Positions 2,677 through 64,000 of a stretch of 64,000 nucleotides of DNA are shown in pieces. Each line of letters begins with the position of its first letter. Position 1 is the first letter of the stretch. Location of the stretch: positions 1 through 64,000 of the IMG/VR virus record IMGVR_UViG_3300029983_000007; one strand, given 5' to 3'. The position numbers were made by a program, and so were the translations under genes. The notes beneath the pieces were generated by a model. That model was not told the DNA's origin and searched no databases. It saw nothing but the letters and a program-made list of their open reading frames with translations.

Positions 2677-3851
2677 TTATTAATATGTATATATTTCATT
2701 GTTTCAACCATTGTAGGATCACCAATTGCCTTAATTGCATCATCTGATAACTTAACACAAGGAATTCCATTTGCACTAGTAAGTTTAATTACCATGTTCA
2801 TTGGTTTACTTTTTTCACATTTATTACTTTTTTTTGAAAAATCCGATGTCAGAAAAGTTCCAATTCCCATTGAACAACGTATTTTACCTTTACAATAGTC
2901 AACAATTTTTAAAGATCTATCAATATCTAAACCATTGCTATATACAATAATCTTAGTAGTTGGATCAATATTTAACTTTTTATAATGAGCAATCATTTTA
3001 TCAGTATAAGTATATTCTGATCCTGAATCCCAGCGTGTACCATCCCATAATTTTGAGTCTTCCAAAGAGAAATCTTTTAAGAATGAATCAATACCGAATG
3101 TATCTGGAAGCATAGTACCCAAATCTCCACTATAAGTTTGTTGCCATTTTTTCATAACAACTTTATTCGGATGATTCAAACTTTCTAATGCTGCTACACC
3201 TGAAATAATTTCATGAGCCAAAGTTCCTACGCATCTAACATCATGTTTCATAGATAGATACGGATTACTTGTGCCTACAAATACTGAATATTTTTTCAAT
3301 TCTCTAACAACCATATCTTGAACCGAGAAATCTCTCCTACGGCGAGTTCCAAAATCAGCTAATGATGCGCCAGCATCACTTAATGTTTTTCCTTTTGAAT
3401 TAATCAATTCAATTTGTCCATCCATACTCCAATCTTTATCCATCACTTTGAAGTACACTTCAGATATAATTGCCATCAATGGAACTTCCCATAATATTGT
3501 ATCTCTCCAAAAACCACTAATATTAATATTTAGTTCACCATTTTTTTCATGAGTAATATAAACTTGTTCAGGATTAAATCTGTAAGCCGCTAAATATTGA
3601 CGATAAGAAACTGGTAGATATTTAAATTTTTCTTTTAAAAAGTCATATTCTTCATCTGTTAATTTCAATTTAGACATCATATTGATTTGTTTTTTAATCA
3701 TTTTGAATGCTTCATCATTAAAAATCATAGATTTATCACGATTGCTAAATGTATATTCACATTCTACATCAGGGTAGTGCTGAATTACAAAATTTTGCAT
3801 ACTTAACTTGTAGATGTCAGTATCTAAGATACTTTTGATAATTTGCTTCAT
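2664..3851 (-). CDS. pncB: Nicotinate phosphoribosyltransferase
   Basis: SILDTDIYKLSM, DFGTRRR, GTSN, GTLAHE, LPDTFG, GTRWDSG and MVIKL motifs. Confidence 0.92.
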   Translation of the reverse strand: MKQIIKSILDTDIYKLSMQNFVIQHYPDVECEYTFSNRDKSMIFNDEAFKMIKKQINMMSKLKLTDEEYDFLKEKFKYLPVSYRQYLAAYRFNPEQVYITHEKNGELNINISGFWRDTILWEVPLMAIISEVYFKVMDKDWSMDGQIELINSKGKTLSDAGASLADFGTRRRRDFSVQDMVVRELKKYSVFVGTSNPYLSMKHDVRCVGTLAHEIISGVAALESLNHPNKVVMKKWQQTYSGDLGTMLPDTFGIDSFLKDFSLEDSKLWDGTRWDSGSEYTYTDKMIAHYKKLNIDPTTKIIVYSNGLDIDRSLKIVDYCKGKIRCSMGIGTFLTSDFSKKSNKCEKSKPMNMVIKLTSANGIPCVKLSDDAIKAIGDPTMVETMKYIHINNYKK

Positions 3852-7089: not shown

Positions 7090-7428
7090 TTAACACCAAC
7101 CTGATTGTTCATTTATCTTTTTAATTTTTTCATCATCAGTGACTAATGAAACTTCAGAGCCAATTAGATTTCTCAAATCAAAATCTTTCATATTATCAAA
7201 TTTTGTTGCATAATAGCCTACTTCACAAGCATCTACAATCAAGTTTTCACCTTTAATAGAAATGTCTTTTGTTTCAAAGTGATGTGTTTTATTATCAAAA
7301 ATCACATCAATATACTTACCTATTGTTATATTGACATTTGTTTCAAATGTAATATAGGTACCTTTTTTTACTTTTCTTCCTGATGATACTATTACAGCAT
7401 CTATTACTTTACCTAAATAATTTTCCAT
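7090..7428 (-). CDS. Hypothetical protein
   Basis: First gene behind the promoter at 7449-7479. Confidence 0.6.
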   Translation of the reverse strand: MENYLGKVIDAVIVSSGRKVKKGTYITFETNVNITIGKYIDVIFDNKTHHFETKDISIKGENLIVDACEVGYYATKFDNMKDFDLRNLIGSEVSLVTDDEKIKKINEQSGWC

Positions 7429-12213: not shown

Positions 12214-14013
12214 ATGGAAACAAAATTAAGAAAAGACATTTCAGTTGAGTTTAAATGGGATTTAACTCATATTTACAAAAATAGAGAAGATTTTGATTGT
12301 GAATGCGATAAAATTGAAGGTTTTACTGAAAAAATTCAATTATTTAATGGTAAATTATCTGATCCAAAGGAATTAAAAAATTGCTTAGATTTGATGGGCG
12401 ATGTACGAAAAATGATAACAAAACTTCATTGTTATGCTAATATGTATTTAGATCAAGAGCAAAATAATGAAGATGCTGATAAATTAGTTCAGAAAGTAAA
12501 AGATGCTGCTGTTAAGTTAGGCTCAAAATGTGCATTTATTACAGATGAAATTATCAATTTTGATGATGATACAATTTCTATGATGTTATCTTGTGATGAT
12601 TTGAAAAATTATCATTTTGATATCAAAGATACAATAAAAAATAAGAGTCACATCTTATCAAAGATAGAAGAAGAACTACTCACTAAAATCTCAGATGTTT
12701 TTTCTACGTCAAATGATGTATATACAATTTTCAAAAATACTGAGTTAAAATACTCAACTGTTACATTATCCAATGGAGAAGAAGTTTTGGTTGATGATAG
12801 AAATTATAGAGTTTTAATAGAATCAAGTAATAGAGAAGATCGTAAATTAGTTTATGATACATTCTATAAAACATTTGATGAATATAAGAATACTCTAGCT
12901 AAACTAATGTTCAAATTTGTAAAAAGTTCAACAACAGGAAGCAAAATCAGAAATTATAAATCATCTTTAGAACAGTCTCTATCATCAGAAAATATTCCAA
13001 TATCAATTTATGATGGATTGATTGAAAATGTTTCTAATAACCTTGATAAAATGTTTGATTATCTTAATTTAAGAAAAGATATTTTAGGTTATGAAGATTT
13101 GAATTATTATGATTTATATAATCCTATAGTTGATAATGTTGATTATGAATATTCATATGATAATGCTAAGAAATTACTTATTGAATCAACTGCTATTCTT
13201 GGAGAAGAATACACAGATATTATGAAAAGAGCAATTAGTGAAAGTTGGATAGATATATATCCAAATCAATTCAAAGACACTGGTGCTTATATGAATGGCT
13301 CTGTGTATGATGTTCATCCTTATATTTTATTGAATTATAAAGGTAAATATGATGATGTTTCAACTATGCTTCATGAAGCAGGACACGCAGGACATTCTGT
13401 GCTGAGTAATGCGAACCAACCTTATAATAAAGCAAGTTACTCAACATTTATTGCTGAAATTGCATCAACAACAAATGAACTTTTGTTACTCAATCATATG
13501 TTGACAACAACAGATGATAAACAATTGAAAATTTTCTTGTTGAATAACTATATTGAACATTTTAGGACTACCGTATTTAGACAAACTATGTTTGCGGAGT
13601 TTGAGAAATTTATGTATGAATCAGTAGAAAATGATGAGGTTCTAACAGCATCAATGATGAATGATAAGTATTATGAGTTACTTAAAAAGTATCATGGAGA
13701 AGATAAAAATATCATTAAGATTGATAAAATGTATGCAAATGAATGGTCACGTATTCCTCATTTCTATTATGATTTTTATGTGTTCCAATATTCAACTAGT
13801 TTTATTTCTGCAGTCATTCTTTCAACAAGAATATTAAATGGAGATAAAGAACAACTTGATAAGTATATGGAATTATTGAAATCTGGTGGTAGTGATTATC
13901 CTGTAGATTTGTTGAAAAAGGCTGGTATTGATTTAACTGACGGAGAATGTTATAAAGATGCATTCAAACAATTCTCAGAATATTTAGAAGAACTGAAGTC
14001 TTTATTGAAATGA
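12214..14013 (+). CDS. pepF: Oligoendopeptidase F (peptidase M3B)
   Basis: KWDLTHIY start, WID..P...K..GAY, HEAGH zinc motif, EIAS, W.RIPHFY..FYVFQY. Confidence 0.93.
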   Translation: METKLRKDISVEFKWDLTHIYKNREDFDCECDKIEGFTEKIQLFNGKLSDPKELKNCLDLMGDVRKMITKLHCYANMYLDQEQNNEDADKLVQKVKDAAVKLGSKCAFITDEIINFDDDTISMMLSCDDLKNYHFDIKDTIKNKSHILSKIEEELLTKISDVFSTSNDVYTIFKNTELKYSTVTLSNGEEVLVDDRNYRVLIESSNREDRKLVYDTFYKTFDEYKNTLAKLMFKFVKSSTTGSKIRNYKSSLEQSLSSENIPISIYDGLIENVSNNLDKMFDYLNLRKDILGYEDLNYYDLYNPIVDNVDYEYSYDNAKKLLIESTAILGEEYTDIMKRAISESWIDIYPNQFKDTGAYMNGSVYDVHPYILLNYKGKYDDVSTMLHEAGHAGHSVLSNANQPYNKASYSTFIAEIASTTNELLLLNHMLTTTDDKQLKIFLLNNYIEHFRTTVFRQTMFAEFEKFMYESVENDEVLTASMMNDKYYELLKKYHGEDKNIIKIDKMYANEWSRIPHFYYDFYVFQYSTSFISAVILSTRILNGDKEQLDKYMELLKSGGSDYPVDLLKKAGIDLTDGECYKDAFKQFSEYLEELKSLLK

Positions 14014-32345: not shown

Positions 32346-33935
32346 TTGATGATAAAATATGATAAAATAGAAATAAAAATATCAAGTAATAATGTTAATC
32401 ATTATAGAAGTAAAGGATATGAATGTAATATTAAAGATATTATAACTATTAATGTTACTGATTTGATGAATCAATCAACAAAAAAAATAATAGCGGTGTG
32501 CGATGTATGCGGTTCTGAACAAGAAATAGAATATAGAAAATATGTTAATAATAAAAAAAATAAGAATTTTTATGTTTGTTCACCATCATGTGCTAGAGAA
32601 AAAGTGAAAATAACTAACAAAGAAAAATATGGAGATGAGAATTATTCAAATGTAGAAAAAAGAAATAAAACTTGCTTAGAAAAATATGGAGATGAAAATT
32701 ATAAAAATTTTGAAAAAACAAAGAAAACAAATTTAGAAAAATATGGGTTTGAATATACTATACAAAATAATGATGTAAAAGAAAAAAGACAAAAGACAAA
32801 CATAATAAAATTTAATTTTGATTCACCTATGAAAAATGATGAAATTAAAATTAAAAGAAGTAATACCATGATAAATAGATATGGTGTGAAAAATTATAAT
32901 AATATTGAAAAATCATTATTTGCAATAAAAAATTCAAATATTGAAAAATTGAAACTTAAATTTAACGTTAATGTAATTGATTATAAAGATAAGTTATTTT
33001 ATATAAAATGTGAAAAAGGACATGAATATAAAGCTACGTATGATATAATAAGTAAAAGATATTTATATAATACTGATATTTGTACAATTTGTAATCCAAT
33101 TGGAGTGACATATTCTAATGAGGAAAAAAAATTATCAGAATTTATATCTGAAAATTATAGTGGAGAAATAATATTAAACAATAGAAGTGTAATAAAACCA
33201 TATGAGTTAGATATTTATTTGCCTGAATTGAATTTGGCATTTGAATATAATGGATTGTATTGGCATAGTGAGCTATATAAAGAAAAAAATTATCATAAGA
33301 ATAAATATAAAATGTGTGAAATAAATAATATACAACTCATACAAATTTGGGAAGATGATTGGTTAAATATAAATGATGTTGTTAAATCAATGATATTAAA
33401 TAAGTTAGTAAAAACTAAAACTAAGATATATGCTAGAAAATGTGAAATAAGAGAAATTTATGATAATATATTAATTAAAGAGTTTTTAAACCAAAATCAC
33501 ATTCAAGGTTTTGTTGGATCAAAAATTAAAATTGGACTTTTTTATTGTAATGAGCTGGTGAGTCTAATGACATTTTCAGAAAAAACTAAAACTAAGATTT
33601 ATGAATTAAATAGATTTTGTAATAGTCTTAACACTAATGTTATTGGAGGCGCTAGTAAACTATTTAATTATTTTATAACAAATTATAAGTACGATAAAAT
33701 AATATCATTTTCAAATAATTCTTATTCTAATGGTAAATTATATGAAAAATTAAAATTTATCAAAACAACAGAACTAAAAGAAGATTATTCTTACATTGTG
33801 AATGGTATAAGAATTCATAAATTTAATTTTAGAAAAAAAGAAAATCAAATAGAAACCGAAAGAGAATTAATGTTAAGTAAAAAATGTTATAGAATTTATG
33901 ATGCTGGTAAAATAAAATTTACCTATCCATTATAA
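32346..33935 (+). CDS. Homing endonuclease (KYG repeats, PD-(D/E)XK, GNAT-like C-terminal domain)
   Basis: ELDIYLPELNLAFEYNGLYWHS, QNHIQG, ELNRFC, RIYDAG; paralog of 22003. Confidence 0.82.
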   Translation: MMIKYDKIEIKISSNNVNHYRSKGYECNIKDIITINVTDLMNQSTKKIIAVCDVCGSEQEIEYRKYVNNKKNKNFYVCSPSCAREKVKITNKEKYGDENYSNVEKRNKTCLEKYGDENYKNFEKTKKTNLEKYGFEYTIQNNDVKEKRQKTNIIKFNFDSPMKNDEIKIKRSNTMINRYGVKNYNNIEKSLFAIKNSNIEKLKLKFNVNVIDYKDKLFYIKCEKGHEYKATYDIISKRYLYNTDICTICNPIGVTYSNEEKKLSEFISENYSGEIILNNRSVIKPYELDIYLPELNLAFEYNGLYWHSELYKEKNYHKNKYKMCEINNIQLIQIWEDDWLNINDVVKSMILNKLVKTKTKIYARKCEIREIYDNILIKEFLNQNHIQGFVGSKIKIGLFYCNELVSLMTFSEKTKTKIYELNRFCNSLNTNVIGGASKLFNYFITNYKYDKIISFSNNSYSNGKLYEKLKFIKTTELKEDYSYIVNGIRIHKFNFRKKENQIETERELMLSKKCYRIYDAGKIKFTYPL

Positions 33936-53350: not shown

Positions 53351-53636
53351 TATTTTTAGAATTTAAATAATCAGACTCAATTTGCGTCCAATTTTGAATA
53401 GGACATGTACCTCCAGCATCTTGATATGTTTTAGGCGTGAAAATCTTTGCTTTTAATGCACATCCACATAAATTACATCTTGCAAATATATCAAATTCAC
53501 CTATTGCTATCATTTCTTTGTGCTCACAACCATTACAAATTTCTATACGTTTACAAGCTAAATCATATTCAGGATCATCCTTGACAACAGTCAGAGCAAT
53601 TCTCCAAGATGTGAAAATTTCTTCAATTTTATTCAT
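53334..53636 (-). CDS. Cys-rich small protein (DUF6171-like)
   Basis: R..IC..C...C..CGC.L.AK...CP...W. Confidence 0.6.
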   Translation of the reverse strand: MNKIEEIFTSWRIALTVVKDDPEYDLACKRIEICNGCEHKEMIAIGEFDIFARCNLCGCALKAKIFTPKTYQDAGGTCPIQNWTQIESDYLNSKNNEKKI

Positions 53637-53687
53637 ATAATATAATTATTTTTTGTTATTATATATAAAATTGAAATGATTCAAACA

Positions 53688-54884
53688 TCAAATATCTTTA
53701 TTTGGCGTACGAATATATCCATTATTTATATGATTTTTAAATAATTTTTCTAATAACACTTTTTTACGAGCTGCATTATATGCGCCCACACTATTTTTAG
53801 TAAATTCGCATATGTTGTCATATTTATTAGCTTCTTCTTGTAATGTTTCTTCTGTCCAATATCCAAGTTTAACTTGTTTTTCTGAATAACCTTGATTTTT
53901 GTGATTTTTAAATAATTCATCTAACATTTTTCTACTTTTGGCTGCAATATAAGCAGAACTATTTTCTCTAAATTCTTTTCTTGTTTTATATTTATTAGCT
54001 TCTTCTTGTAAAGATTTTATTGTCCATTTTAATCCACCTGATCCTAATGATCCAGCTTTGACTGAATTTATCATAATCCATTCATTATTTTCATAAACAT
54101 CAACCCAATATATTTCCTTTTTTATAGCGTCATTAGAATTTAAATTTTCTTCTAATAATTTATACTTTGGAAGAGGAATATTATTTATTTTACAAAAATT
54201 AATCAATGATTCTTTTTCACTAAATAAATGTTCTTTGTCTCGTCTATTTATATTGTTTGTTAATCCAACATAAGCATTATTATAATTTGTGAATTCATAA
54301 ACATATATAACATAACTATTTTCTTTCCATTCAATTATATTCCGACGTCCTTGATTGTCGTGATTTTTAAATAATTCATCTATTAATCTATTTTTATACG
54401 CAATTTTATAACCTGTGCTTTTTTTCTGAAATTCTCCTCTTGTTATATATTTATTAGCTTCTTCTTGTAATCTATCAAACGTCCAATAACCTTTTTTATT
54501 TACTTTAATATCAAATCCGTTATTAGAATGATTTTTGAATAATTCATCTATTAATTTTTTACTTAATGCTGCACTATATGCAGATTTGTTTTTACGAAAT
54601 TCTCCTCTTGTTTTATGTTTGTTTGCTTCTTCTTGAAGTTTTTCTCTATTCCAATGCCCAATAGTCATTTTACCTTCTTCGTAACCTTTATTTATGTGAT
54701 TTTTAAATAAATCATCAATTAATTTAATTTTAGATGCCGCTATATAAGCGGAGTTGCATTTTTCTCTAAATTCTTTTCGATTTTCGTATTTATCAGCTTC
54801 TTCTTGCAATTTGTCAATAGTCCAATAACCAATAGGTTTACGACTTTCATTTATAAAAATATTATAATTTTTACTTATTTTCAT
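53688..54884 (-). CDS. GIY-YIG homing endonuclease with five helical repeats
   Basis: VIYVYEF...YVGLTNN..RR..EH; 5x W..E.LQEEA.KY..R.EF...LFKNH. Confidence 0.8.
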   Translation of the reverse strand: MKISKNYNIFINESRKPIGYWTIDKLQEEADKYENRKEFREKCNSAYIAASKIKLIDDLFKNHINKGYEEGKMTIGHWNREKLQEEANKHKTRGEFRKNKSAYSAALSKKLIDELFKNHSNNGFDIKVNKKGYWTFDRLQEEANKYITRGEFQKKSTGYKIAYKNRLIDELFKNHDNQGRRNIIEWKENSYVIYVYEFTNYNNAYVGLTNNINRRDKEHLFSEKESLINFCKINNIPLPKYKLLEENLNSNDAIKKEIYWVDVYENNEWIMINSVKAGSLGSGGLKWTIKSLQEEANKYKTRKEFRENSSAYIAAKSRKMLDELFKNHKNQGYSEKQVKLGYWTEETLQEEANKYDNICEFTKNSVGAYNAARKKVLLEKLFKNHINNGYIRTPNKDI

Positions 54885-54947
54885 TGAATAATATATTTTT
54901 AACTATATATTTATAAAAAAATCAATGATAAATTATTGAATTTTTTG

Positions 54948-55027
54948 AACCTATGATGGGAGTCAAACCCACATTTACAACTTCAATTACAGTTACTTGA
55001 TTCGTAGTCAAGACTGGTTACATAGGC
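54948..55027 (-). ncRNA. D-armless tRNA-like RNA, anticodon ACG (Arg)
   Basis: Acceptor GCCTATG/CATAGGT; stem CTTGA/TCAAG with loop CTACGAA; T-arm GTGGG-TTTGACT-CCCAT; no D-arm. Confidence 0.7.
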
Positions 55028-55040
55028 ATATTATATCTAC

Positions 55041-55523
55041 TCATTTTTTTATAACAATATCTATATTTTCTAATTTTTCTTTTCTTGAGTATCTATATTT
55101 ATATTTATTAATACCTTCTATATCTGAATCTAAAAATTGTTCTATAAATTCTTCAGTTTGCATAGTAACATATTTTTTAGTACAATTTTCTTTATTGTCA
55201 CCATAATGACTAGTATCAAATCCTACTATCCAATAATTGTTGAATTTTTTATAATTTTCCTTTGTCACATCACCATCAATTTCTAAGCCTTCAGTCCAAT
55301 TTAAAAATGAATCAGAATCAAAAAATCGTCCATATGTTAATCCTCCATGTACACTTATGGTATTCATATCATCATATGAAACTTCATACAATGGATGATT
55401 AGTAGGTAATAATATATAACCATTCCCCCATCCAAATTCCATTATTAATGGATAATTTTGTATAGTAGATAAATGTTTAGTAAGATAATTCTCAACTATT
55501 AGTGTGTAAATTCCGTATTTCAT
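55041..55523 (-). CDS. Conserved phage protein (HGGLTY...GFD..H) with RKEKLENI tag
   Basis: WGNGY, VHGGLTY, WIVGFDTSHYGD. Confidence 0.65.
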   Translation of the reverse strand: MKYGIYTLIVENYLTKHLSTIQNYPLIMEFGWGNGYILLPTNHPLYEVSYDDMNTISVHGGLTYGRFFDSDSFLNWTEGLEIDGDVTKENYKKFNNYWIVGFDTSHYGDNKENCTKKYVTMQTEEFIEQFLDSDIEGINKYKYRYSRKEKLENIDIVIKK

Positions 55524-55543
55524 AATATTTTTTTATAATAAAA

Positions 55544-55574
55544 CAAATATACAAAAAAATTGTTATATATACAA
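55544..55574 (-). promoter_or_regulatory. Bacteroidota-type promoter
   Basis: Minus strand TTG-N20-TATATTTG. Confidence 0.6.
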
Positions 55575-55581
55575 CTTAAAA

Positions 55582-56106
55582 TTATATTTTTTCTTGAATA
55601 TTGTCAACATCTGTATCAACTATTTTCAAATCATCTTGTATGTCATCCACATGATCTGTTATATTGTCAACATCTGTGTCAACAGATTTTAAATTTTCTT
55701 GTATACCATCAATGTGATTTTTTATGTTGTCTACATCTGTATCAACATATTTTAATTCTACTTCTATATCATCAACATGATATTTTATATCATCTACATC
55801 AGTTCCTATGTGCTCAGTCATAACTTCTATTTTTTCAGATAACTCTGCTATCTTAGATATAATAGCATCAGTTCTACTTCCACTTATTTTAGCAATATAA
55901 CCTAAGACTGGTAAAGCAACTCCTTGAAAAAAAACAGAAACTATATATTGCATCCATGCAACTGTTCCTGATGGTTGACTAAAAAATAATGGAATTATAA
56001 CTAACAATGTTATTATCCAAAACATTGTCATACTAGATAATGAATCTGATAAAAAAATTGCAAATTTTTCTTGCGATGACTTTAATTTCTCAACTAATTT
56101 ATTCAT
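55582..56106 (-). CDS. DUF1003-like membrane protein with 21-aa C-terminal repeats
   Basis: Two TM helices, Q...LPV motif; repeats of DTDVDNI..H.D.IQ..LK.V; true start MNKLVEK at 56106. Confidence 0.6.
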   Translation of the reverse strand: MNKLVEKLKSSQEKFAIFLSDSLSSMTMFWIITLLVIIPLFFSQPSGTVAWMQYIVSVFFQGVALPVLGYIAKISGSRTDAIISKIAELSEKIEVMTEHIGTDVDDIKYHVDDIEVELKYVDTDVDNIKNHIDGIQENLKSVDTDVDNITDHVDDIQDDLKIVDTDVDNIQEKI

Positions 56107-56160
56107 ATATTTTTTATATTTATATATAAATAGTATAAATAATATTAATTTTTTTTTTTG

Positions 56161-56243
56161 TGGGACTAGTGGGGCTCGAACCCACAACCTCCGAAGAGAT
56201 CAGTTTTACAGACTGACATGACTACCTGTGTCATATTAATCCC
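56161..56243 (-). tRNA. tRNA-Tyr(GTA), long variable arm
   Basis: GGGATTA/TAGTCCC; TCAGT-CTGTAAA-ACTGA; TTCGAGC T-loop. Confidence 0.9.
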
Positions 56244-56252
56244 ATATTTTTG

Positions 56253-56377
56253 TGGTAGCAGATGGACTCGAACCACCAACTTCTGAGACATCGGCCCAGC
56301 ACTCTATCCTTCGCTCGTTTCAAATTATTTATTCTAGATTCATAATTATCCCCTTTGTGCTTTTGAGTTACACTACC
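56253..56377 (-). ncRNA. tRNA-like RNA with about 50-nt D-loop insertion, apparent anticodon GAT
   Basis: GGTAGTG/TGCTACC; D-stem ACTC/GAGT around a 60-nt loop; CTGGG-CCGATGT-CTCAG; GGTGG-TTCGAGT-CCATC. Confidence 0.65.
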
Positions 56378-56419
56378 TTTTTTTATTGTAATATTCTTTA
56401 TTTAATTTTTTATTGAGTG

Positions 56420-56498
56420 TACTGCCGAAGGGACTTGAACCCTCATACACCAATTACCTTGTTAATGACTGGATATAAGCCAGTGGGGATACGACAGT
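56420..56498 (-). ncRNA. D-armless tRNA-like RNA, anticodon TAT (Ile)
   Basis: ACTGTCG/CGGCAGT; ACTGG-CTTATAT-CCAGT; GAGGG-TTCAAGT-CCCTT. Confidence 0.7.
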
Positions 56499-56514
56499 GT
56501 ATTTATTTTTGTTG

Positions 56515-56591
56515 TTGGTGAAGTGGGACTTGAACCCACATGTGACCAATTAACCTTTCTACTACTTATCAGGCAGAGGGTATATTCACCA
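56515..56591 (-). ncRNA. D-armless tRNA-like RNA, anticodon GAT (Ile)
   Basis: TGGTGAA/TTCACCA; CTGC-CTGATAA-GTAG; GTGGG-TTCAAGT-CCCAC. Confidence 0.7.
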
Positions 56592-56602
56592 ATGTTATTT
56601 AG

Positions 56603-56676
56603 TAGTCTCGGTGAGACTTGAACTCACGATTTATTGCTTATCAGGCAATTGCTCTAACCAACTGAACTACAAGACT
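56603..56676 (-). tRNA. tRNA-Ile(GAT)
   Basis: Canonical cloverleaf; ATTGC-CTGATAA-GCAAT. Confidence 0.93.
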
Positions 56677-56716
56677 ATTTTAGTTTATTATTTTTTTATT
56701 GGTATGATACTATTTG

Positions 56717-56797
56717 AGCACATTGACAGACTCGAACTGTCGGTGTTTATATCTCGCTTTTGCAGAACGATGCCTTCGCCACTCAGACCAAATGTGC
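56717..56797 (-). tRNA. tRNA-Cys(GCA)
   Basis: GCACATT/AATGTGC; U73 discriminator; loop CTGCAAA; 12-nt variable region. Confidence 0.9.
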
Positions 56798-56806
56798 ATT
56801 TCTATT

Positions 56807-57682
56807 TTAAAAATTAATTTTTCTTCCTTTTGTCCAACCATTAAATATCCATTCATCTAATTCACATTTTTTAATTTTCTTGTTTTTATTGATATTTAAA
56901 TTATAAATCCAACAAGTATTAAATTGTGAATTTTTATTTCCTTTTTGTTGTATTGAATTTTTTTCTCCAATTTTACGTTTCGTTTCATCAGTAATTTTTC
57001 TGCCAGAAAAAATATGCTTTAATTCACCAGATAAATATCGAGGATCATTTGTTGATACGTTTAATGTATTATTTTTATTGTCTTTAACCGTAATAAATCC
57101 TTTCTTGTGAAATATTAATTCACCAGATAAATATCTTGGATCATCAATAGAAACTCTAATTTTTTCGTTGTTTTTATTTTTAACAACAACAAAACCTTTA
57201 CCAACACACTGAAATTCACCTGATAAATATCTTGGATCTTCTGAATTCACAGATAATGTATTATTATCTTTGTCTTTAACCATAATCAATCCTTTCATTA
57301 TACTTACCAATTCACCTGATAAATACCTTGGATCTGTTTTATGTACTGATAATGTATTGTTATCTTTATCTTTAACAGTAATCAAATTATATGAATTAAA
57401 TCCTCCTCCACCTAATATTATATTATAAGTATTACCATTTTTAATAAATTCATCATTTACCAATTCTTTTTCTTTTTCCAACATTTTTTCTTTATCATCA
57501 AAATTAAATAACACAATTTTTTCAAAATTTTCAACTCCAAATTCTTTTATAGCTTTTTTAATATTAGATCCAGAACCCATATATTTATCATGTATGTTTT
57601 CTGTAATATGAATACCAATATAAATTTTATTATTTAACTTATTTGTTATTTGATAAACTATATAATATTTTTTATTTTCCAT
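56807..57682 (-). CDS. GIY-YIG homing endonuclease (Seg-like) with internal repeats, inside the tRNA array
   Basis: YIVYQITN..N.KIYIGIH...Y.GSG; 4x V..DDPRYLSGE repeats; NUMOD3-like end. Confidence 0.85.
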   Translation of the reverse strand: MENKKYYIVYQITNKLNNKIYIGIHITENIHDKYMGSGSNIKKAIKEFGVENFEKIVLFNFDDKEKMLEKEKELVNDEFIKNGNTYNIILGGGGFNSYNLITVKDKDNNTLSVHKTDPRYLSGELVSIMKGLIMVKDKDNNTLSVNSEDPRYLSGEFQCVGKGFVVVKNKNNEKIRVSIDDPRYLSGELIFHKKGFITVKDNKNNTLNVSTNDPRYLSGELKHIFSGRKITDETKRKIGEKNSIQQKGNKNSQFNTCWIYNLNINKNKKIKKCELDEWIFNGWTKGRKINF

Positions 57683-57751
57683 AAGTCGAACTTTTTATCA
57701 CTATATATAAAAAGTTCGATATCAATTTTATTAATATTTATTTATTTTTAG

Positions 57752-57838
57752 TACCGTTAGGTGGAATCGAACCACCGCAATCTATAAGACTGAAAGGTTT
57801 ATGAGACCTCCGTAATAACCAACTCTACTCATAACGGT
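57752..57838 (-). tRNA. tRNA with CAT anticodon (elongator Met or Ile2), long variable arm
   Basis: ACCGTTA/TAACGGT; GAGGT-CTCATAA-ACCTT; variable stem AGTC/GATT. Confidence 0.8.
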
Positions 57839-57911
57839 ATATTTATGTTTAAATATATAGTTAATATCATACTAATAGTATGATATTGTTAAATATTTTA
57901 AACTATTTTTG

Positions 57912-57985
57912 CGGGAAAGTTGAGATTTGAACTCAAGACACTTTGCTTAACAGGCAAACGCTCTAACCAACTGAGCTACATTCCC
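57912..57985 (-). tRNA. tRNA-Asn(GTT)
   Basis: Canonical; TTTGC-CTGTTAA-GCAAA. Confidence 0.93.
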
Positions 57986-57990
57986 TTATG

Positions 57991-58078
57991 CGCACTGGGT
58001 AGGATTTGAACCTACGGTGGAGATTACTCTCACTGGATTAACAGTCCAGACTTTTCGACCAACTAAAGCAACCAATGC
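57991..58078 (-). tRNA. tRNA-Asn(GTT), long variable arm
   Basis: GCATTGG/CCAGTGC; CTGGA-CTGTTAA-TCCAG; variable stem GAG-TAAT-CTC. Confidence 0.88.
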
Positions 58079-58080
58079 AT

Positions 58081-58117
58081 ATAATAACTTAATAATAACT
58101 TAATAATAACTTAATAA
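58081..58117. repeat. 11-bp tandem repeat (3 copies) in a tRNA spacer
   Basis: ATAATAACTTA x3. Confidence 0.85.
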
Positions 58118-58119
58118 AG

Positions 58120-58194
58120 CGGACTATAACGGTTACGGTCCGTTAATTTTACTTGAGTGACAGTCAAGTTCTCCACCAAGGAGCCTAATAATCC
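58120..58194 (-). tRNA. tRNA-Asp(GTC) with non-canonical T-loop
   Basis: GGATTAT/ATAGTCC; CTTGA-CTGTCAC-TCAAG; AACGG-ACCGTAA-CCGTT. Confidence 0.8.
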
Positions 58195-58201
58195 ATTTTT
58201 G

Positions 58202-58286
58202 TACTGGTAACGGGGTTCGAACCCGTGAGGAAATTTCTTTCCACAACATTGAAAGTGTTGCGACCTAGCCACTAGTCCATACCAGC
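58202..58286 (-). tRNA. tRNA-Glu(TTC), long variable arm
   Basis: GCTGGTA/TACCAGT; CAACA-CTTTCAA-TGTTG; variable stem GGAAA-GAAA-TTTCC. Confidence 0.88.
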
Positions 58287-58296
58287 ATTTTATTAG

Positions 58297-58373
58297 CGGA
58301 TTATATCGGGCTCAAACCGACTTCCTCAACCGTGACAGGGTTGTATGCAAAGTATCACTCACACCTATAATCC
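58297..58373 (-). tRNA. tRNA-Asp(GTC)
   Basis: GGATTAT/ATAATCC; CAACC-CTGTCAC-GGTTG; TTTGAGC T-loop. Confidence 0.85.
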
Positions 58374-58382
58374 ATTTTTTTG

Positions 58383-58453
58383 TGGGATAGGAGGTAATCG
58401 AAACCTCGTAGTTATGATTTACAGTCATTCTAAGTAACCCTGACCTCTATCCC
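58383..58453 (-). tRNA. tRNA-Tyr(GTA), short variable arm
   Basis: GGGATAG/CTATCCC; ATGA-CTGTAAA-TCAT; GAGGT-TTCGATT-ACCTC. Confidence 0.82.
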
Positions 58454-58487
58454 ATTTATTCATTATCCAGTATTTCAAAGATCATTT

Positions 58488-58532
58488 AAAAACAAAAAAC
58501 TCAGTTCTTATTTTTAAGAACTGAGTTTTTTT
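58488..58532 (-). terminator. Attenuator terminator ahead of the tRNA array
   Basis: Transcript AAAAAAA-CTCAGTTCTT-AAAAAT-AAGAACTGAG-TTTTTTGTTTTT. Confidence 0.85.
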
Positions 58533-58557
58533 ATTATTCACATAATAATTTATATAC

Positions 58558-58689
58558 TTATCCAGTTCTTCCTACATTATTTTCATCATCATTAATATAA
58601 TCATTAATCATATCAATACATATCTCTTCCATATTGTAATTGATATTACAATTGCGATAAATGCTATATATGTTATTAATGTTATTCAT
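58558..58689 (-). CDS. Putative attenuator leader peptide (43 aa)
   Basis: MNNINNIYSIYRNCNINYNMEEICIDMINDYINDDENNVGRTG; last codons complementary to the terminator 5' arm. Confidence 0.75.
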   Translation of the reverse strand: MNNINNIYSIYRNCNINYNMEEICIDMINDYINDDENNVGRTG

Positions 58690-58718
58690 GATATTTACTT
58701 TTACTTTGTTTTTATTTG

Positions 58719-58789
58719 TTGCGGACGTCTGATTCAAACAGCGACTATGGGTTATGAGCCCATTGAGATATCATTTCTCCACCTCCGCG
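58719..58789 (-). tRNA. Initiator tRNA-fMet(CAT), copy 2
   Basis: C1:A72 mismatch; ATGGG-CTCATAA-CCCAT with three G-C pairs; irregular T-stem. Confidence 0.8.
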
Positions 58790-58805
58790 ATATTTTTTTT
58801 ATTTG

Positions 58806-58876
58806 TTGCGGACGTCTGATTCAAACAGCGACTATGGGTTATGAGCCCATTGAGATATCATTTCTCCACCTCCGCG
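58806..58876 (-). tRNA. Initiator tRNA-fMet(CAT), copy 1 (identical, 87-bp period)
   Basis: Exact duplicate of 58719..58789. Confidence 0.8.
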
Positions 58877-58883
58877 ATATATT

Positions 58884-59510
58884 TTAATTTTTTCTGTTTC
58901 TATGATACAATTTTAGTGATTCTGAAATCTTTATTTTAGTTTCATCTGAAATTTTACTTTTATTTACTGTTTTATATGAATCAGACATTTTTTTCTTACT
59001 TTCATCTGATACAAAATGATTTTTTAATTTATTAGATATTTTATTTCTTTCTTCTTCAGATTCAAATCTTTTTTTAGCTGAATCTGACAATTTCTTTCTT
59101 GTTTCTTCTGATACAATTCTACATTTTAAAGATTCTGAAATCTTTTTCTTCGATTCATCAGAAAAAATTTTACCTATTGATGATTCTTTTAATTTATTTT
59201 TAGTTTCATCACTATGTTTTTTACCTTTAAAATGTGGACCACCTTCTCCTCCAATTCCTATATTATAATTTCTTTTTGATTTTATAAAATCTTCTGTTAT
59301 AATTTCTTTTTCTTTTTTATTCATTTCTGATTCATTATCAAAAATAAACAAAATTTCTTTTTTGAAATTTTCCTTACCATGCAATTTAATTGCATTTTCT
59401 AAGGCTTTACCAGAACCATAATAAGAATCATTTGTATTTTCAGTTTGATGCTTTCCAATATAATACTTATCATTTAATATATTTGTTGTTTTATAAATTG
59501 TATAGTACAA
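58884..59510 (-). CDS. GIY-YIG homing endonuclease with NUMOD3 repeats
   Basis: YTIYKTTN..N.KYYIGKH...Y.GSG; repeated S.ET..K.S.S; TTG start. Confidence 0.85.
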   Translation of the reverse strand: MYYTIYKTTNILNDKYYIGKHQTENTNDSYYGSGKALENAIKLHGKENFKKEILFIFDNESEMNKKEKEIITEDFIKSKRNYNIGIGGEGGPHFKGKKHSDETKNKLKESSIGKIFSDESKKKISESLKCRIVSEETRKKLSDSAKKRFESEEERNKISNKLKNHFVSDESKKKMSDSYKTVNKSKISDETKIKISESLKLYHRNRKN

Positions 59511-59582
59511 AATTATTTCTTTTTTATGTATATATAAATATATAAAATCAGAAATTAACCTGTTACCACTATACTATATATT

Positions 59583-59816
59583 TTAATCTTTTTCTTTATC
59601 TATTTTCTTATAAAGTTTCTTAGCAATCTCTTTTGCTTTTGAATTCATTCCTTTTTCTGTTTTAGGAACTTCACTATAATCAATTTTGATTTTATCAGCA
59701 AACATTATAAATTTTTCAGTTCTATCAGATTTCTTTTTCAGTTCATCATAATTTCCTTGAATTCTATTTACTACTTCTGCTGATTCATCAATTTTATTTT
59801 CTTTAACTTTTTTCAT
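59583..59816 (-). CDS. Lys-rich small protein (77 aa) directly behind attenuator 1
   Basis: MKKVKENKIDE...KIDKEKD; ATG lies 3 nt after the terminator U-tract. Confidence 0.6.
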   Translation of the reverse strand: MKKVKENKIDESAEVVNRIQGNYDELKKKSDRTEKFIMFADKIKIDYSEVPKTEKGMNSKAKEIAKKLYKKIDKEKD

Positions 59817-59819
59817 AAC

Positions 59820-59853
59820 AAAAAATCCAGTCATTTTTTAATTGACTGGATTT
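59820..59853 (-). terminator. Attenuator terminator 1
   Basis: Transcript AAATCCAGTCA-ATTAAAAAA-TGACTGGATTTTTT. Confidence 0.85.
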
Positions 59854-59880
59854 ATATATTTATAGGCATAAGCCTTAAAT

Positions 59881-59970
59881 TTATTTCTCAGTCAATTGGG
59901 ATGTATCATCAATATTATTGATAATTTCGTTGTTACACATTTCCTCATTTATATATAAATTACGATACAT
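59881..59970 (-). CDS. Putative attenuator leader peptide (29 aa)
   Basis: MYRNLYINEEMCNNEIINNIDDTSQLTEK; AATTGACTG in the last codons pairs with the terminator 5' arm. Confidence 0.72.
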   Translation of the reverse strand: MYRNLYINEEMCNNEIINNIDDTSQLTEK

Positions 59971-60075
59971 CTTGTTTTGTTTTTTTATTATTATTTTTGT
60001 TGAAAGTTTAATATTTTATTCTTTGTTATATATTATAGAAAAAAAGTCATTTTTTTCTATTTTTAATTTGTAGTA

Positions 60076-60107
60076 CAAAAGTAATACAAAGTTTTCATTC
60101 TACCAAA
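60076..60107 (-). promoter_or_regulatory. Bacteroidota-type promoter feeding attenuator 1
   Basis: TTTGGTAGA...N20...TACTTTTG. Confidence 0.75.
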
Positions 60108-60174
60108 TGTTTTTCAATCTTTTTTATATATTATTGAAAAAATATCATTTTTTTCTACTTTTAATATGATAGTG

Positions 60175-60206
60175 CAAAATTACAATAAAGTTTTCATTCT
60201 ACCAAA
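60175..60206 (-). promoter_or_regulatory. Second tandem Bacteroidota-type promoter
   Basis: TTTGGTAGA...N20...TAATTTTG; shares a 21-nt repeat with the promoter at 60076. Confidence 0.7.
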
Positions 60207-60589
60207 TCTTTTGATTGTTTTTCTTCAATATGTTTTTTAAATAGTTTATTAAATAATTTATAAATATTACTGAATTGTATATCATTGTAGAAATTTGTTT
60301 GTTTTTCAATTTCTTCTTTAGATTTAGTTTTTAAATCTGTTGGACTTAATCCTGTAATTGATCACCTTTCATACTCACTATTCATGTGTTTTGAAAAGTT
60401 TTCATCTATTGTGGTTACTCCTGCTCTGGTTGAACCACCAAAATGATGGGCTTTTACTGTATCACCTTCATTGAACATAGTACCATAAAAAGGTCTTGCT
60501 ATTGTACCATCAGCATTGACATATAATCCTAAGAAATCTTTTCTTATTTTTACTATTTTAGACATAACCTTATTGTTGTATTGACTCAA
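60194..60589 (-). pseudogene. Gene with a single internal TGA at 60362-60364
   Basis: The ORF-track protein ends YER*, but the frame stays open for 55 more codons (SITGLSPTDLK...DLVE*). Confidence 0.5.
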
Positions 60590-61589: not shown

Positions 61590-62108
61590 TTAATGTTGAC
61601 TAACAGTTACATTTTTTAATTTGTTAAATAGTCCATCGTGTTCAAGAGAACTAAAATATGAGCTATCATTATCTGAATAACTGAAGCAATACATAACTCC
61701 ACTTTCCACATCTTTACCATCAATTACTTGAAGTTTTAATTTTCTTTCATTGAAGAATTCGTTAAGTGCTTTTTTACCATATCTATTCATTGCATCGTTG
61801 TAGGCATCCCATTTGTCTTGGTCATTCTCAATATGGTTAAAATCATTATAATCAGGAGCGCCTATTAAATAATCACTTTGACATATAATATTAGTTGCCT
61901 TTTCAGTATCATTCTTTTCTTGTTCGCAGATGTCTTTCCATACTGTTTCAGCTACTTGATCAACTGAATATATATCATCTCCATAATACAATTGAGTATC
62001 ATCGAATAACATTTTTTTAACATCTTCAGCGCATTTAGGTTCCATTGGAAAAATAACTACAAAGCTACTTGATGATGAATTACCAACAAATCCCGTTCTA
62101 ATTTTCAT
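61590..62108 (-). CDS. MKIRxGFVxNSSSSSF-family protein
   Basis: Starts MKIRTGFVGNSSSSSF. Confidence 0.7.
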   Translation of the reverse strand: MKIRTGFVGNSSSSSFVVIFPMEPKCAEDVKKMLFDDTQLYYGDDIYSVDQVAETVWKDICEQEKNDTEKATNIICQSDYLIGAPDYNDFNHIENDQDKWDAYNDAMNRYGKKALNEFFNERKLKLQVIDGKDVESGVMYCFSYSDNDSSYFSSLEHDGLFNKLKNVTVSQH

Positions 62109-62266
62109 ATTTTATCTTTTTTATCATTTAAATCTATTGTAATATCAGATTTTCTAAAAATTGCTTTAATTATTTATGTTATTATACCACCAGTAATAGA
62201 AATTAATGAAATACAACCTACAAATATCCAAAATCCTGATGTTACATATTTTAAAAATTATAACAT
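62105..62266 (-). pseudogene. Small membrane protein gene with in-frame TAA at codons 3 and 31
   Basis: ML*FLKYVTSGFWIFVGCISLISITGGIIT*IIKAIFRK...; final TGA overlaps the next ATG (ATGA). Confidence 0.55.
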
Positions 62267-62305
62267 ATAATTTTATTATTTTTTTTTTTTGCAAATTTAC
62301 TAAAA

Positions 62306-62989
62306 TTATTTGATAATACAAAAATTTATTGTCAAATAATTATTATGAATTTTTTTTATCTCACACAATTTATCTTTTCTTTTGTATACAGGATTACACA
62401 CTAGGCATATAAGACCGTGTTTTTTTGTATTCCACATCATCTGATAATCACCTTTTTGTTTGCATTTAGGACATGATTCGTTACTTTCTGAACCTATAAC
62501 TTGATAATCTAATGAATAATAATCATTATCAAAAGAATAAAATTCAGAGTCTCCATCAAGTAAACTGTTTATGCTATACCATCCATCGTCATTATCGTTA
62601 TATTTTTGTAGTATAATTTTAAGTTCTGATTTAGCATCTTCTGATAATTTAGTATTATATTTCCATAAATCCCAATCTTCATTATTACATGTTGAAATTA
62701 AATAGCAATCTGCAACTTTTTTTATATAAGTATCATAATTGCAACTTTGAAATGTTATTGCCTGATTCTCATCTAAATTTTGTAAAAAATTTAGATATTT
62801 ATCGTGCTCATTTTTTCGATATTCATCCTGTTTTTTATCTCCACCTCCATAATCTCCATAATCTCCATATTCATCATATTTTCTATTAATCATATATGTA
62901 GCAAGTTCACGTACACTTTTAAAATTCTTATCTGATATTATAAAACTACTTGATGATGAATTACTAACAAATCCAGTTCTTATTTTCAT
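62306..62989 (-). CDS. MKIRxGFVxNSSSSSF-family protein with zinc ribbon and RKDKL tag
   Basis: MKIRTGFVSNSSSSSF; CPKC...CLVC. Confidence 0.7.
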   Translation of the reverse strand: MKIRTGFVSNSSSSSFIISDKNFKSVRELATYMINRKYDEYGDYGDYGGGDKKQDEYRKNEHDKYLNFLQNLDENQAITFQSCNYDTYIKKVADCYLISTCNNEDWDLWKYNTKLSEDAKSELKIILQKYNDNDDGWYSINSLLDGDSEFYSFDNDYYSLDYQVIGSESNESCPKCKQKGDYQMMWNTKKHGLICLVCNPVYKRKDKLCEIKKIHNNYLTINFCIIK

Positions 62990-63008
62990 TTTCTATTATT
63001 TTCTATTA

Positions 63009-63311
63009 TTAACAATATGTCGTACCAGTTATCAATTCAACTTCACTAATATCAACATTTAATGTGTCTGCTACTAATTTAGATTTTTCTATTATATCTG
63101 ATATCGATGTTGCACTATCACTTAACTCTTCACTTCTTGATATTATATAACCAACAATATATTCGTAATTACTATTTTCAACATTAATTACTTCAATATT
63201 ATTGTCAAATCCTTGTTCAATTTCATCTGTAGTGCAATTTGCTCTTTTGATACCAATTACCACAAAGCTACTTGAACTTGAATTACTCACAAATCCTTTT
63301 CTTATTTTCAT
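63009..63311 (-). CDS. MKIRxGFVxNSSSSSF-family protein
   Basis: Starts MKIRKGFVSNSSSSSF. Confidence 0.7.
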   Translation of the reverse strand: MKIRKGFVSNSSSSSFVVIGIKRANCTTDEIEQGFDNNIEVINVENSNYEYIVGYIISRSEELSDSATSISDIIEKSKLVADTLNVDISEVELITGTTYC

Positions 63312-63324
63312 ATTTTCTTATTTT

Positions 63325-63786
63325 TTATCCATTTCTACCTGCGCCAAAATAAACTTCTGATTTATTTAAGTCTAACCCTGATTTTTCACTATAAAAAGCA
63401 TTATAAACTTTTTTGTCATTATTCTCAAAGAATGACATATCAATATCATAATCAATATCATCATAATCAGATGTCATAAAATCTGAATCACCTTCATTAT
63501 TGCATATATTAACAACTAAAAATAAATCTTCATCTTTACAATCTTTAGTATCTAACGAAGCATTTGTTTGAAATGACTCTACATAAATTTTATTATTGTT
63601 AAAATGTATATCATAATTACCGCTTTCTTTAATATTAGATAACGTTAATACTTTAACATAATAATCCAATTTAATATTATTATCTTTTGTGTATTGTGTA
63701 AATTCGTTGTAATCATTAATCTTGGCTATACCAACAATAAAACTACTTGATGATGAATTACTTACGAAACCATTTCTTATTTTCAT
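63325..63786 (-). CDS. MKIRxGFVxNSSSSSF-family protein
   Basis: Starts MKIRNGFVSNSSSSSF at 63786; ends GAGRNG. Confidence 0.7.
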   Translation of the reverse strand: MKIRNGFVSNSSSSSFIVGIAKINDYNEFTQYTKDNNIKLDYYVKVLTLSNIKESGNYDIHFNNNKIYVESFQTNASLDTKDCKDEDLFLVVNICNNEGDSDFMTSDYDDIDYDIDMSFFENNDKKVYNAFYSEKSGLDLNKSEVYFGAGRNG

Positions 63787-63799
63787 ATTCTTATTTTTT

Positions 63800-64000
63800 T
63801 TACAATAAATGTGGTCTTGCTTCAGCAATTCCAGCATTTGTTACTTGATACCATTTTGGATTGTATTCAGATAGATTGTTAGCTCCTCCATAAGATAATG
63901 CTGAACGAACTCCATAAATTAATCCTTCTATTACAAATCTTACTCCACCTTTGAATGGTATAGTTGTTGACTCTCCTTCTACATTTCTCTCAGCTTGACC
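63800..64000 (-). CDS. IMP dehydrogenase/GMP reductase family, 3' part only
   Basis: VEGESTTIPFKGGV...GVRSALSYGGA...VTNAGIAEARPH matches the GuaB/GuaC C-terminus. Confidence 0.85.
   Translation of the reverse strand, partial: GQAERNVEGESTTIPFKGGVRFVIEGLIYGVRSALSYGGANNLSEYNPKWYQVTNAGIAEARPHLL

Follow-up and report, generated by a model that had tools for sequence, protein, structure and literature searches.

Putative leader-peptide attenuators whose codons match the tRNA genes downstream in huge phages

[quoted passage not shown] The conservation and covariation of these structures and the matching of leader codons to tRNAs were found across many phages. Based on this comparative evidence, and without any experimental data, we consider that these modules likely work by ribosome-mediated leader-peptide attenuation and act as demand sensors for the phage's own tRNA supply (probability of about 0.8).

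Leader 1 and the tRNA array behind it

Leader 1 was initially noticed in a first-pass annotation of the window made without database searches, which described it as an unannotated 43-codon ORF of the minus strand. Its coordinates (58689..58558) were confirmed and the composition then reported holds exactly: 36 of its first 38 residues are N (12), I (8), Y (4), D (4), E (3), M (3) or C (2), and it is devoid of K, L and F, which represent 11%, 8% and 5% of the residues encoded by the long ORFs of the window. In total, 86% of its codons are cognate to anticodons of the array, the highest value among the 188 small ORFs of the window (mean 39%, sd 10%). Among all stop-free windows of 38 codons in the six frames (n = 22,700), at least 33 cognate codons were found only at the leader 1 locus and in the leader 1 frame. 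The first-pass annotation had also claimed that the only Arg codon of the sensing part, CGC, is read by the ACG anticodon of an element located at 54948. This claim held, both by the presence of a tRNA-Arg(ACG) gene at 55027-54948 and by the choice of synonymous codon. At their conserved Arg position, the leaders use CGC or CGT (1% and 11% of the Arg codons of the window, compared to 75% for AGA), which match the phage tRNA-Arg(ACG/GCG), rather than the usual AGA. Furthermore, one lineage with Arg(TCG) and Arg(GCG) in its array has CGA and CGC in its leader.

The tRNAs encoded behind leader 1 had been listed as Tyr, Asp, Glu, Asp, Asn, Asn, CAT, Cys, Ile, three Ile-like and Tyr; this list also held, the second gene being Asp-like. 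Most tRNA genes were identified using ARAGORN and Rfam, and four degenerate genes by reading of their anticodon loop. The Asp-like gene (58296-58373, minus strand) has no Rfam match. The three Ile-like genes (56253-56591, minus strand) have the anticodon loops GAT, TAT and GAT, and one of these genes contains a large insert and measures 125 nt. Several tRNAs of the array have a length of 82-89 nt though they are not Leu, Ser or Tyr. In lineages D and F, the gene immediately downstream of terminator 1 was first considered to be an opal-suppressor tRNA(UCA), but this was withdrawn, as its loop fits Glu(TTC) better. Recoding of a stop codon in the window was also rejected: the long ORFs end with TAA (43), TGA (9) or TAG (1), and reading TGA or TAG as sense merges no genes.

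Neither leader is preceded by a Shine-Dalgarno sequence; both have an A-rich upstream context, as do the real genes of the window. Since such a sequence is absent from 56 of the 58 long ORFs of the window, its lack before the leaders is normal here.

A second putative attenuator module and the layout of the operon

Leader 1 is not located at the head of the tRNA array but belongs to the second of two tandem attenuator modules; two upstream tRNA(CAT) genes, a second leader with its terminator and a pair of promoter-like sites at the true start of the operon had been missed in the first-pass annotation (Table 1). The two tRNA(CAT) genes are carried by an 87-bp tandem duplication (58706-58885). 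Because they sit upstream of leader 1, this leader is internal to the operon. Its RNA may thus undergo processing at the 5′ end, which weighs against the attenuation model. The whole unit comprises, in order, the promoter-like sites, leader 2, terminator 2, a gene encoding a 77-aa protein, a homing-endonuclease-like ORF, the two tRNA(CAT) genes, leader 1, terminator 1 and the tRNA array. Leader 2 is a paralogue of the leader 1 module, with peptides that are fairly well conserved at the N-terminus; with 76% of codons cognate to the array, it ranks third among the 188 small ORFs.

The two promoter-like sites, whose function is inferred, belong to the TTTG-N20-TAnnTTTG class. This motif class is enriched in the window, and the TAnnTTTG box of the proximal site is conserved in one relative (L094). 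Promoters of this class and the lack of Shine-Dalgarno sequences are typical of Bacteroidota. A Bacteroidota host of the window phage is only an inference, and it is an assumption that such a host couples transcription to translation. A scan for sigma-70 promoters found 61 sites compared to 56 expected and is uninformative in the AT-rich DNA of the window.

It should also be mentioned that homing-endonuclease ORFs are found at different points of the tRNA operon depending on the lineage: GIY-YIG/NUMOD3 in the window and HNH-like in a relative (L016, 6491-7180).

Table 1. Features of the putative tRNA operon of the window, in the order of transcription
Feature	Coordinates	Strand	Remarks
Promoter-like site, upstream copy (TTTG-N20-TAnnTTTG, Bacteroidetes type)	60175..60206	minus	Function inferred
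Promoter-like site, proximal copy	60076..60107	minus	About 105 nt upstream of the leader 2 ATG; function inferred
Leader 2 ORF	59881..59970	minus	Operon head; 29 codons + TAA; conserved in eight lineages
Leader 2 antiterminator strand, AATTGACTG	59889..59897	minus	Pairs with 59848-59840
Spacer hairpin	59858..59880	minus	In the loop of the leader 2 antiterminator; stem letters vary between lineages, complementarity kept
Terminator 2	59820..59853	minus	11-bp stem and T-run
77-aa protein gene	59583..59816	minus	First gene behind (putatively gated by) attenuator 2; no Pfam or PHROG match
GIY-YIG/NUMOD3 homing-endonuclease-like ORF	58884..59510	minus	Within the operon; absent at that place in relatives
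Two identical tRNA(CAT) genes	58875-58807 and 58788-58720	minus	Rfam 42.6 bits each; missed by default ARAGORN
Leader 1 ORF	58558..58689	minus	ATG, 43 codons + TAA (TAA at 58560-58558)
Leader 1 antiterminator strand, AAGAACTGG	58562..58570	minus	Ends 1 nt before the stop codon
Small A/U hairpin	58531..58548	minus	In the spacer; enclosed by the leader 1 antiterminator helix
Terminator 1	58494..58531	minus	Perfect 17-pair stem, 4-nt loop, T-run
Conserved box, TCTTTGAMATMYTGG family	58467..58482	minus	Just 3′ of terminator 1; once per related phage locus, always there
tRNA block 1 (Tyr, Asp-like, Glu, Asp, Asn, Asn, CAT)	57751..58453	minus	Behind terminator 1; ARAGORN/Rfam; Asp-like by anticodon loop
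GIY-YIG ORF	56807-57682	minus	Between the two tRNA blocks
tRNA block 2 (Cys, Ile(GAT), three Ile-like, Tyr)	56160..56797	minus	ARAGORN/Rfam, loop reading
tRNA-Arg(ACG)	54948..55027	minus	Matches the CGY codon conserved in leaders 1 and 2

Mutually exclusive helices and their conservation

The first-pass annotation had proposed that the terminal codons of leader 1 pair with the 5′ arm of terminator 1, in the geometry of ribosome-dependent attenuation known from trp, his and thr operons. The pairing held: AAGAACTGG (58570-58562) and TCAGTTCTT (58524-58516, terminator 5′ arm) form eight Watson-Crick pairs plus one G-U. Random 37-mers drawn from this strand reach the energy of the duplex (-11.2 kcal/mol) in only 0.65% of cases. 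Folding confirmed that the two helices are mutually exclusive, since leader 1 RNA truncated before the terminator 3′ arm adopts the antiterminator helix and the full-length RNA adopts the terminator fold (MFE -44 kcal/mol, z -5). Truncated leader 2 RNA also adopts its antiterminator fold (z -6.6). The proposed geometry held only in part, as a trp-style 1:2 hairpin was not seen: neither the folds nor the alignment revealed a conserved upstream partner of the antiterminator strand that could form an anti-antiterminator or pause hairpin of this type. Such a hairpin is a trp-type feature and is not found in every attenuator. In its absence, an untranslated leader should default to read-through. 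The last three to four cognate codons of leader 1 would be too near the antiterminator strand for stalls there to free it, which is inferred from sequence alone. Both points weigh against the model.

Relatives of the locus, found by exact-pattern and protein-anchored scans, fall into eight lineages whose flanking proteins are 47-72% identical to those of the window, using a 160-aa neighbouring protein as the measure. No close relative was found among GenBank phages searched with the window locus, and a scan of bacterial genomes with the 160-aa protein gave no match. An identical copy of terminator 1 is present in eight public contigs. The block 58716-58450 has 93-95.5% identity to relatives, compared to 68-84% for nearby genes. 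In all eight lineages, both leaders are kept as ATG ORFs that close at the antiterminator strand, their stop codon being located no more than about 9 nt downstream of the antiterminator core. For leaders 1 and 2 of the window clade, the antiterminator strand either overlaps the stop codon or has its end 1-17 nt upstream of it; that of the Gln leaders described below starts at the stop codon or a few nt after it. The sensing part of relatives shows the substitutions D to N, I to N and N to I, as well as one AAT triplet inserted in frame, all of which remain in the cognate set. Overall, each of the 19 modules of the window clade has an ATG leader ORF of 13-43 codons, as do more than 20 modules from other phages. 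However, these module counts overstate the number of independent events because many modules are related by descent.

The duplex between the 3′ end of the ORF and the 5′ arm of the terminator has an energy in the top 0.15-1.6% of random genomic 37-mers for 16 of the 17 modules, the exception being a module cut off by the limits of the interval analyzed. Because MAFFT misaligned the 3′ regions of leader 1, the invariant CTG/CAG core was used to anchor the alignment from which the covariation of leaders 1 and 2 was counted. In this set of 13 distinct leader 1 or leader 2 modules, the six core antiterminator pairs are formed in 13/13, with compensatory changes at three positions (G-C/U-A 5:8, A-U/G-C 2:11 and A-U/G-C 12:1). 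For one of these three positions, four of the 13 modules have a mismatch between the 3′ and 5′ arms of the terminator itself. Therefore, the antiterminator is under selection of its own. In the leader 2 alignment, 96% of the cells are paired for the terminator and 90.8% for the antiterminator, with two compensatory pairs each, compared to only 3-45% for registers shifted by 1-3 columns. As a control, 128 terminators from 22 sources were analyzed; a Watson-Crick complement of 7 nt or more was found upstream only in the 13 leader modules. According to the first-pass annotation, homologous loci lacking the frame or the antiterminator pairing would refute its reading. Both comparisons turned out in its favour: the frame and the stop position are kept in the eight lineages, and the helix is kept with compensatory changes.

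Leader codons track the downstream tRNAs in other phages

Three lineages of the window clade carry a separate cluster of two or three tRNA-Gln genes behind an ORF of 13-17 codons that includes four or five consecutive Gln codons. Counted from the first base of the final Gln codon, the antiterminator strand of this Gln leader, TGATTGGGT, begins 12 nt downstream, and a terminator with the same chassis follows. A search of IMG/VR with an exact 15-mer of the Gln leader returned 44 matches, of which 42 were chance matches. A scan of IMG/VR for the terminator chassis revealed many more modules in other AT-rich contigs, up to 436 kb in size.

These additional modules have leaders with very different compositions. 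Leaders with 6-10 Leu codons of mixed types precede four or five Leu tRNAs with different anticodons (L241 and L259). Other leaders have their tRNAs directly downstream: YYYEAYEE with Glu and Tyr tRNAs and GNGAIAGGG with Gly, Gly and Ala tRNAs (both in L218), SSSSSRSS with Arg and three Ser tRNAs (L184), HSKHSSFSSKWF with Trp, His, Phe, Ser and Lys tRNAs (L241), a Thr/Val/Gly/Arg/Ala-rich leader with tRNAs of the same set (L159), and Pro/Gln/Lys/Tyr/Thr/Gly-rich leaders, also with tRNAs of the same set (L172, L198 and L235). Some single genomes have a matching leader for each successive tRNA segment (L218, L241, L208 and L239). Leu, Glu/Tyr and Ile/Gly/Ala modules were also found in LR756501.1 (735,411 bp) and LR745206.1 (634,780 bp). 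The module loci of these two GenBank records, both unannotated, are L276 (LR756501.1, 189084-201225) and L277 (LR745206.1, 359425-371895). Al-Shayeb et al. (2020) predict Bacteroidetes hosts for their genomes larger than 634 kb (PMC7162821); "attenuat", "leader" and "terminator" do not occur in the main text of that paper.

The matching was quantified with an uncurated rule, taking the longest ORF for each terminator and the tRNAs up to the next terminator. The mean enrichment of leaders in codons of their own tRNA set (z 2.74, compared to 0.16 ± 0.25 after permutation) was not reached by any of 20,000 permutations (P < 5e-5). Moreover, it is specific to the reading frame: z is 2.78 in frame but 0.30 and -0.14 in the two other frames (P about 4e-7 and 5e-10). 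All 17 folded modules of the new types show the same antiterminator/terminator alternative. This codon tracking, observed for at least nine amino-acid sets in unrelated huge phages, is the strongest evidence for the attenuator reading, and it answers in the affirmative the suggestion of the first-pass annotation that leader composition should follow tRNA content.

One locus also counts against the model: in L201 (IMGVR_UViG_3300037087_000760, 7234-7404), Ile, Asn, Met and Gln tRNAs are preceded by an ORF that resembles a leader and abounds in Ile, Met, Gln and Asn, but that has no in-frame stop codon before the terminator. A variant mechanism or an assembly error could be involved. In L184 (minus strand, 3055-3158), a protein gene takes the place of the tRNAs behind a module with the same terminator and antiterminator chassis. 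Therefore, the device is not restricted to tRNA cargo.

These data bear on three alternative explanations. The first assumes an ordinary terminator next to an ORF that either arose by chance as a low-complexity frame or encodes a functional micropeptide, the match with the tRNAs being coincidental. In its favour, the G+C content of the genome (about 24%) makes frames rich in N, I and Y common, and the leader 2 peptides show some N-terminal conservation. However, the rank of leader 1 among the 188 small ORFs and its unique position among the 22,700 windows speak against a chance frame, the permutation and frame tests argue against coincidence, and neither the covariation of the antiterminator nor the lack of such pairing at about 115 other terminators would be expected. 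We consider this explanation very unlikely.

The second alternative is that a trans-acting factor, either a protein or the tRNA itself as in T-box leaders, operates the two-helix switch and that the ORF is incidental. T-box leaders indeed choose between terminator and antiterminator according to tRNA status and regulate translation-related genes, two features that they would share with the present modules. However, their recognition of the tRNA is direct, relies on the T-box sequence and a single specifier codon and involves no ribosome, whereas the signal found here depends on the reading frame and vanishes in the two other frames. Moreover, a leader can have up to eight cognate amino acids and is always in frame with an ATG and closed at the antiterminator. 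No T-box (RF00230) was detected in the window region at E ≤ 1, nor at the gathering score in 10 related loci. More generally, no Rfam leader family (His, Leu, Thr, Trp and others) was matched: in 53500-60500, only tRNA hits reached the gathering score of their family, and the few other Rfam matches at E ≤ 1 fall well short of it and do not coincide with any leader or terminator. There is thus very little to recommend this second alternative.

In the third alternative, the terminator merely insulates the upstream unit and the tRNAs are mainly transcribed from a downstream promoter, for example the conserved box located at 58482-58467. Members of the TCTTTGAMATMYTGG family were found in the relatives L018 (4100-4114), L094 (6250-6264) and L148 (4212-4226). 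This box could be a processing site, a special promoter or an unrecognised promoter that bypasses the gate. In favour of this alternative, the box directly follows terminator 1 in all relatives, and matches resembling sigma-70 promoters are present there, but at chance frequency. Against it, the box occurs once per phage and is therefore not a reused promoter motif. Furthermore, the first Gln tRNA of L034 starts only 13 nt after the T-run, leaving no room for a separate promoter, so that this tRNA would be made only by read-through, and the first tRNA of L235 and L172 starts 56-61 nt after the T-run of the terminator. Finally, a downstream promoter would leave both the conserved antiterminator and the codon tracking unexplained. 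This alternative is unlikely, although less so than the two previous ones.

Proposed mechanism and comparison with known systems

In the attenuation model that we favour, transcription would start from the promoter pair near 60100-60200 and meet two gates in series, leader 2/terminator 2 then leader 1/terminator 1, each leader being translated during its own transcription. If decoding is fast, the ribosome would reach the stop codon and cover the last codons, which constitute the antiterminator strand; the terminator would then form and the polymerase would halt before the tRNAs. The sensed codons of the window are almost only those of Asn, Ile, Tyr, Asp, Glu, Met, Cys and CGY-Arg. If a charged cognate tRNA is scarce, decoding would slow down and the ribosome would lag more than about 12-15 nt behind the antiterminator strand, which would be free to pair with the terminator 5′ arm, so that the polymerase would read through into the genes of tRNAs for the same codons. 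Rising tRNA levels would then accelerate the decoding of the leader and close the gate. Because the cargo consists of tRNAs for the sensed codons, this loop would exert a negative feedback on tRNA supply, and two gates in series should sharpen the response. Comparative evidence thus supports the attenuation interpretation of the first-pass annotation. However, several elements are inferred: that the leaders are translated and that this translation is coupled to transcription, how efficiently termination occurs, that the switch depends on the ribosome and what the physiological trigger is. Candidate triggers include a mismatch in codon usage, cleavage of host tRNAs and starvation; the host anticodon nucleases proposed in the first-pass annotation remain speculation, without evidence in this analysis.

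A fourth alternative accepts a ribosome-driven attenuator but assumes that it reports amino-acid starvation, the global translation capacity or the stage of infection (a timer), the tRNAs being mere cargo. In the model established for trp and his attenuation, a stalled ribosome cannot distinguish an uncharged tRNA from a missing one. Furthermore, leader 2 also precedes a protein gene, and the L184 module is followed by a protein gene only. However, this alternative accounts neither for the segment-by-segment tuning of leaders within one genome (L218, L277 and L241) nor for the rare synonymous codons that match the phage anticodons, and we regard it as unlikely.

The phage modules thus appear to work like leader-peptide attenuators and meet most of the features that define them; their cargo, inferred feedback logic, modular retuning and viral setting are new. 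They would share with the enterobacterial attenuators of trp, his, leu, thr, ilvGMEDA and pheA a short translated ORF with regulatory codons, an intrinsic terminator and an antiterminator strand occluded by the ribosome. Leaders sensing several amino acids are also known for ilv and thr. However, these bacterial attenuators control enzymes, whereas the phage modules would gate tRNA genes, sense up to eight amino acids and lack a 1:2 or pause hairpin. Since tRNA genes and not enzymes are the cargo, the product would feed back directly on the sensor. In Escherichia coli, the pheST operon, with its pheM leader, couples phenylalanyl-tRNA synthetase to the speed of the ribosome on cognate codons. 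It is similar in that a component of translation is governed by ribosome speed on its own cognate codons, but it concerns one cellular synthetase and one amino acid, compared to modular sets of tRNA genes in a virus here. In the mgtCBR leader of Salmonella, two short ORFs have been proposed to control the choice of stem-loops and downstream transcription (PMC3641672). This leader is chromosomal, belongs to a virulence/Mg2+ operon and responds to other signals, whereas the phage has two complete serial attenuator modules with their own terminators and a tRNA cargo.

The tRNA arrays of phages have been viewed as a means of codon compensation or of replacement of tRNAs cut by defence systems (PMC10264068, PMC11464382). 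These works concern the same cargo, i.e. clustered phage tRNAs, and address the question of why phages carry tRNAs. Our full-text literature search did not find any paper linking leader peptides, attenuation or codon sensing to tRNA genes or to phage tRNA arrays. Although this is not a proof of absence, it agrees with the first-pass annotation, which knew of no description of such a phage circuit. If confirmed, this would be the first case found of tRNA genes regulated by the decoding speed of their own codons, in a closed feedback loop on tRNA supply, and the tRNA arrays of the largest phages would be segmented regulons, one per amino-acid set, rather than passive cargo. Why and when phages need their own tRNAs would then become testable, as read-through at each gate would report which codons are limiting during infection. 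These modules would also provide natural, compact and orthogonal sensors of codon speed for at least 19 amino acids, reusable in synthetic biology. All of these amino acids come from the per-segment sets, except Pro, which comes from the terminator chassis scan; Asp, Met and Lys are mainly represented within multi-amino-acid sets. A bolder reading is also conceivable: the tRNA arrays of huge Bacteroidota-type phages could be amino-acid-specific "codon-demand regulons", with each segment behind its own leader attenuator, that sense, during infection, the loss of tRNAs due to tRNA-cleaving immunity of the host or to host shut-off and replace tRNAs only for the codons that fail.

Other genes of the window

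Besides the tRNA operon, the window carries several other genes that deserve mention. Four adjacent paralogous genes (61590-63837, minus strand) encode proteins with a common N-terminus, MKIR.GFV.NSSSSSF. Two paralogues of about 510 aa, encoded on the plus strand (22003-23529 and 32346-33935), resemble DUF7487/HNH homing endonucleases. A gene resembling those of M3 oligopeptidases (12214-14013, plus strand) is an unusual cargo for a phage. Finally, a 398-aa protein (53688-54884, minus strand) is made of internal repeats (KLQEEANKY...EF motif), with related copies that vary between lineages.
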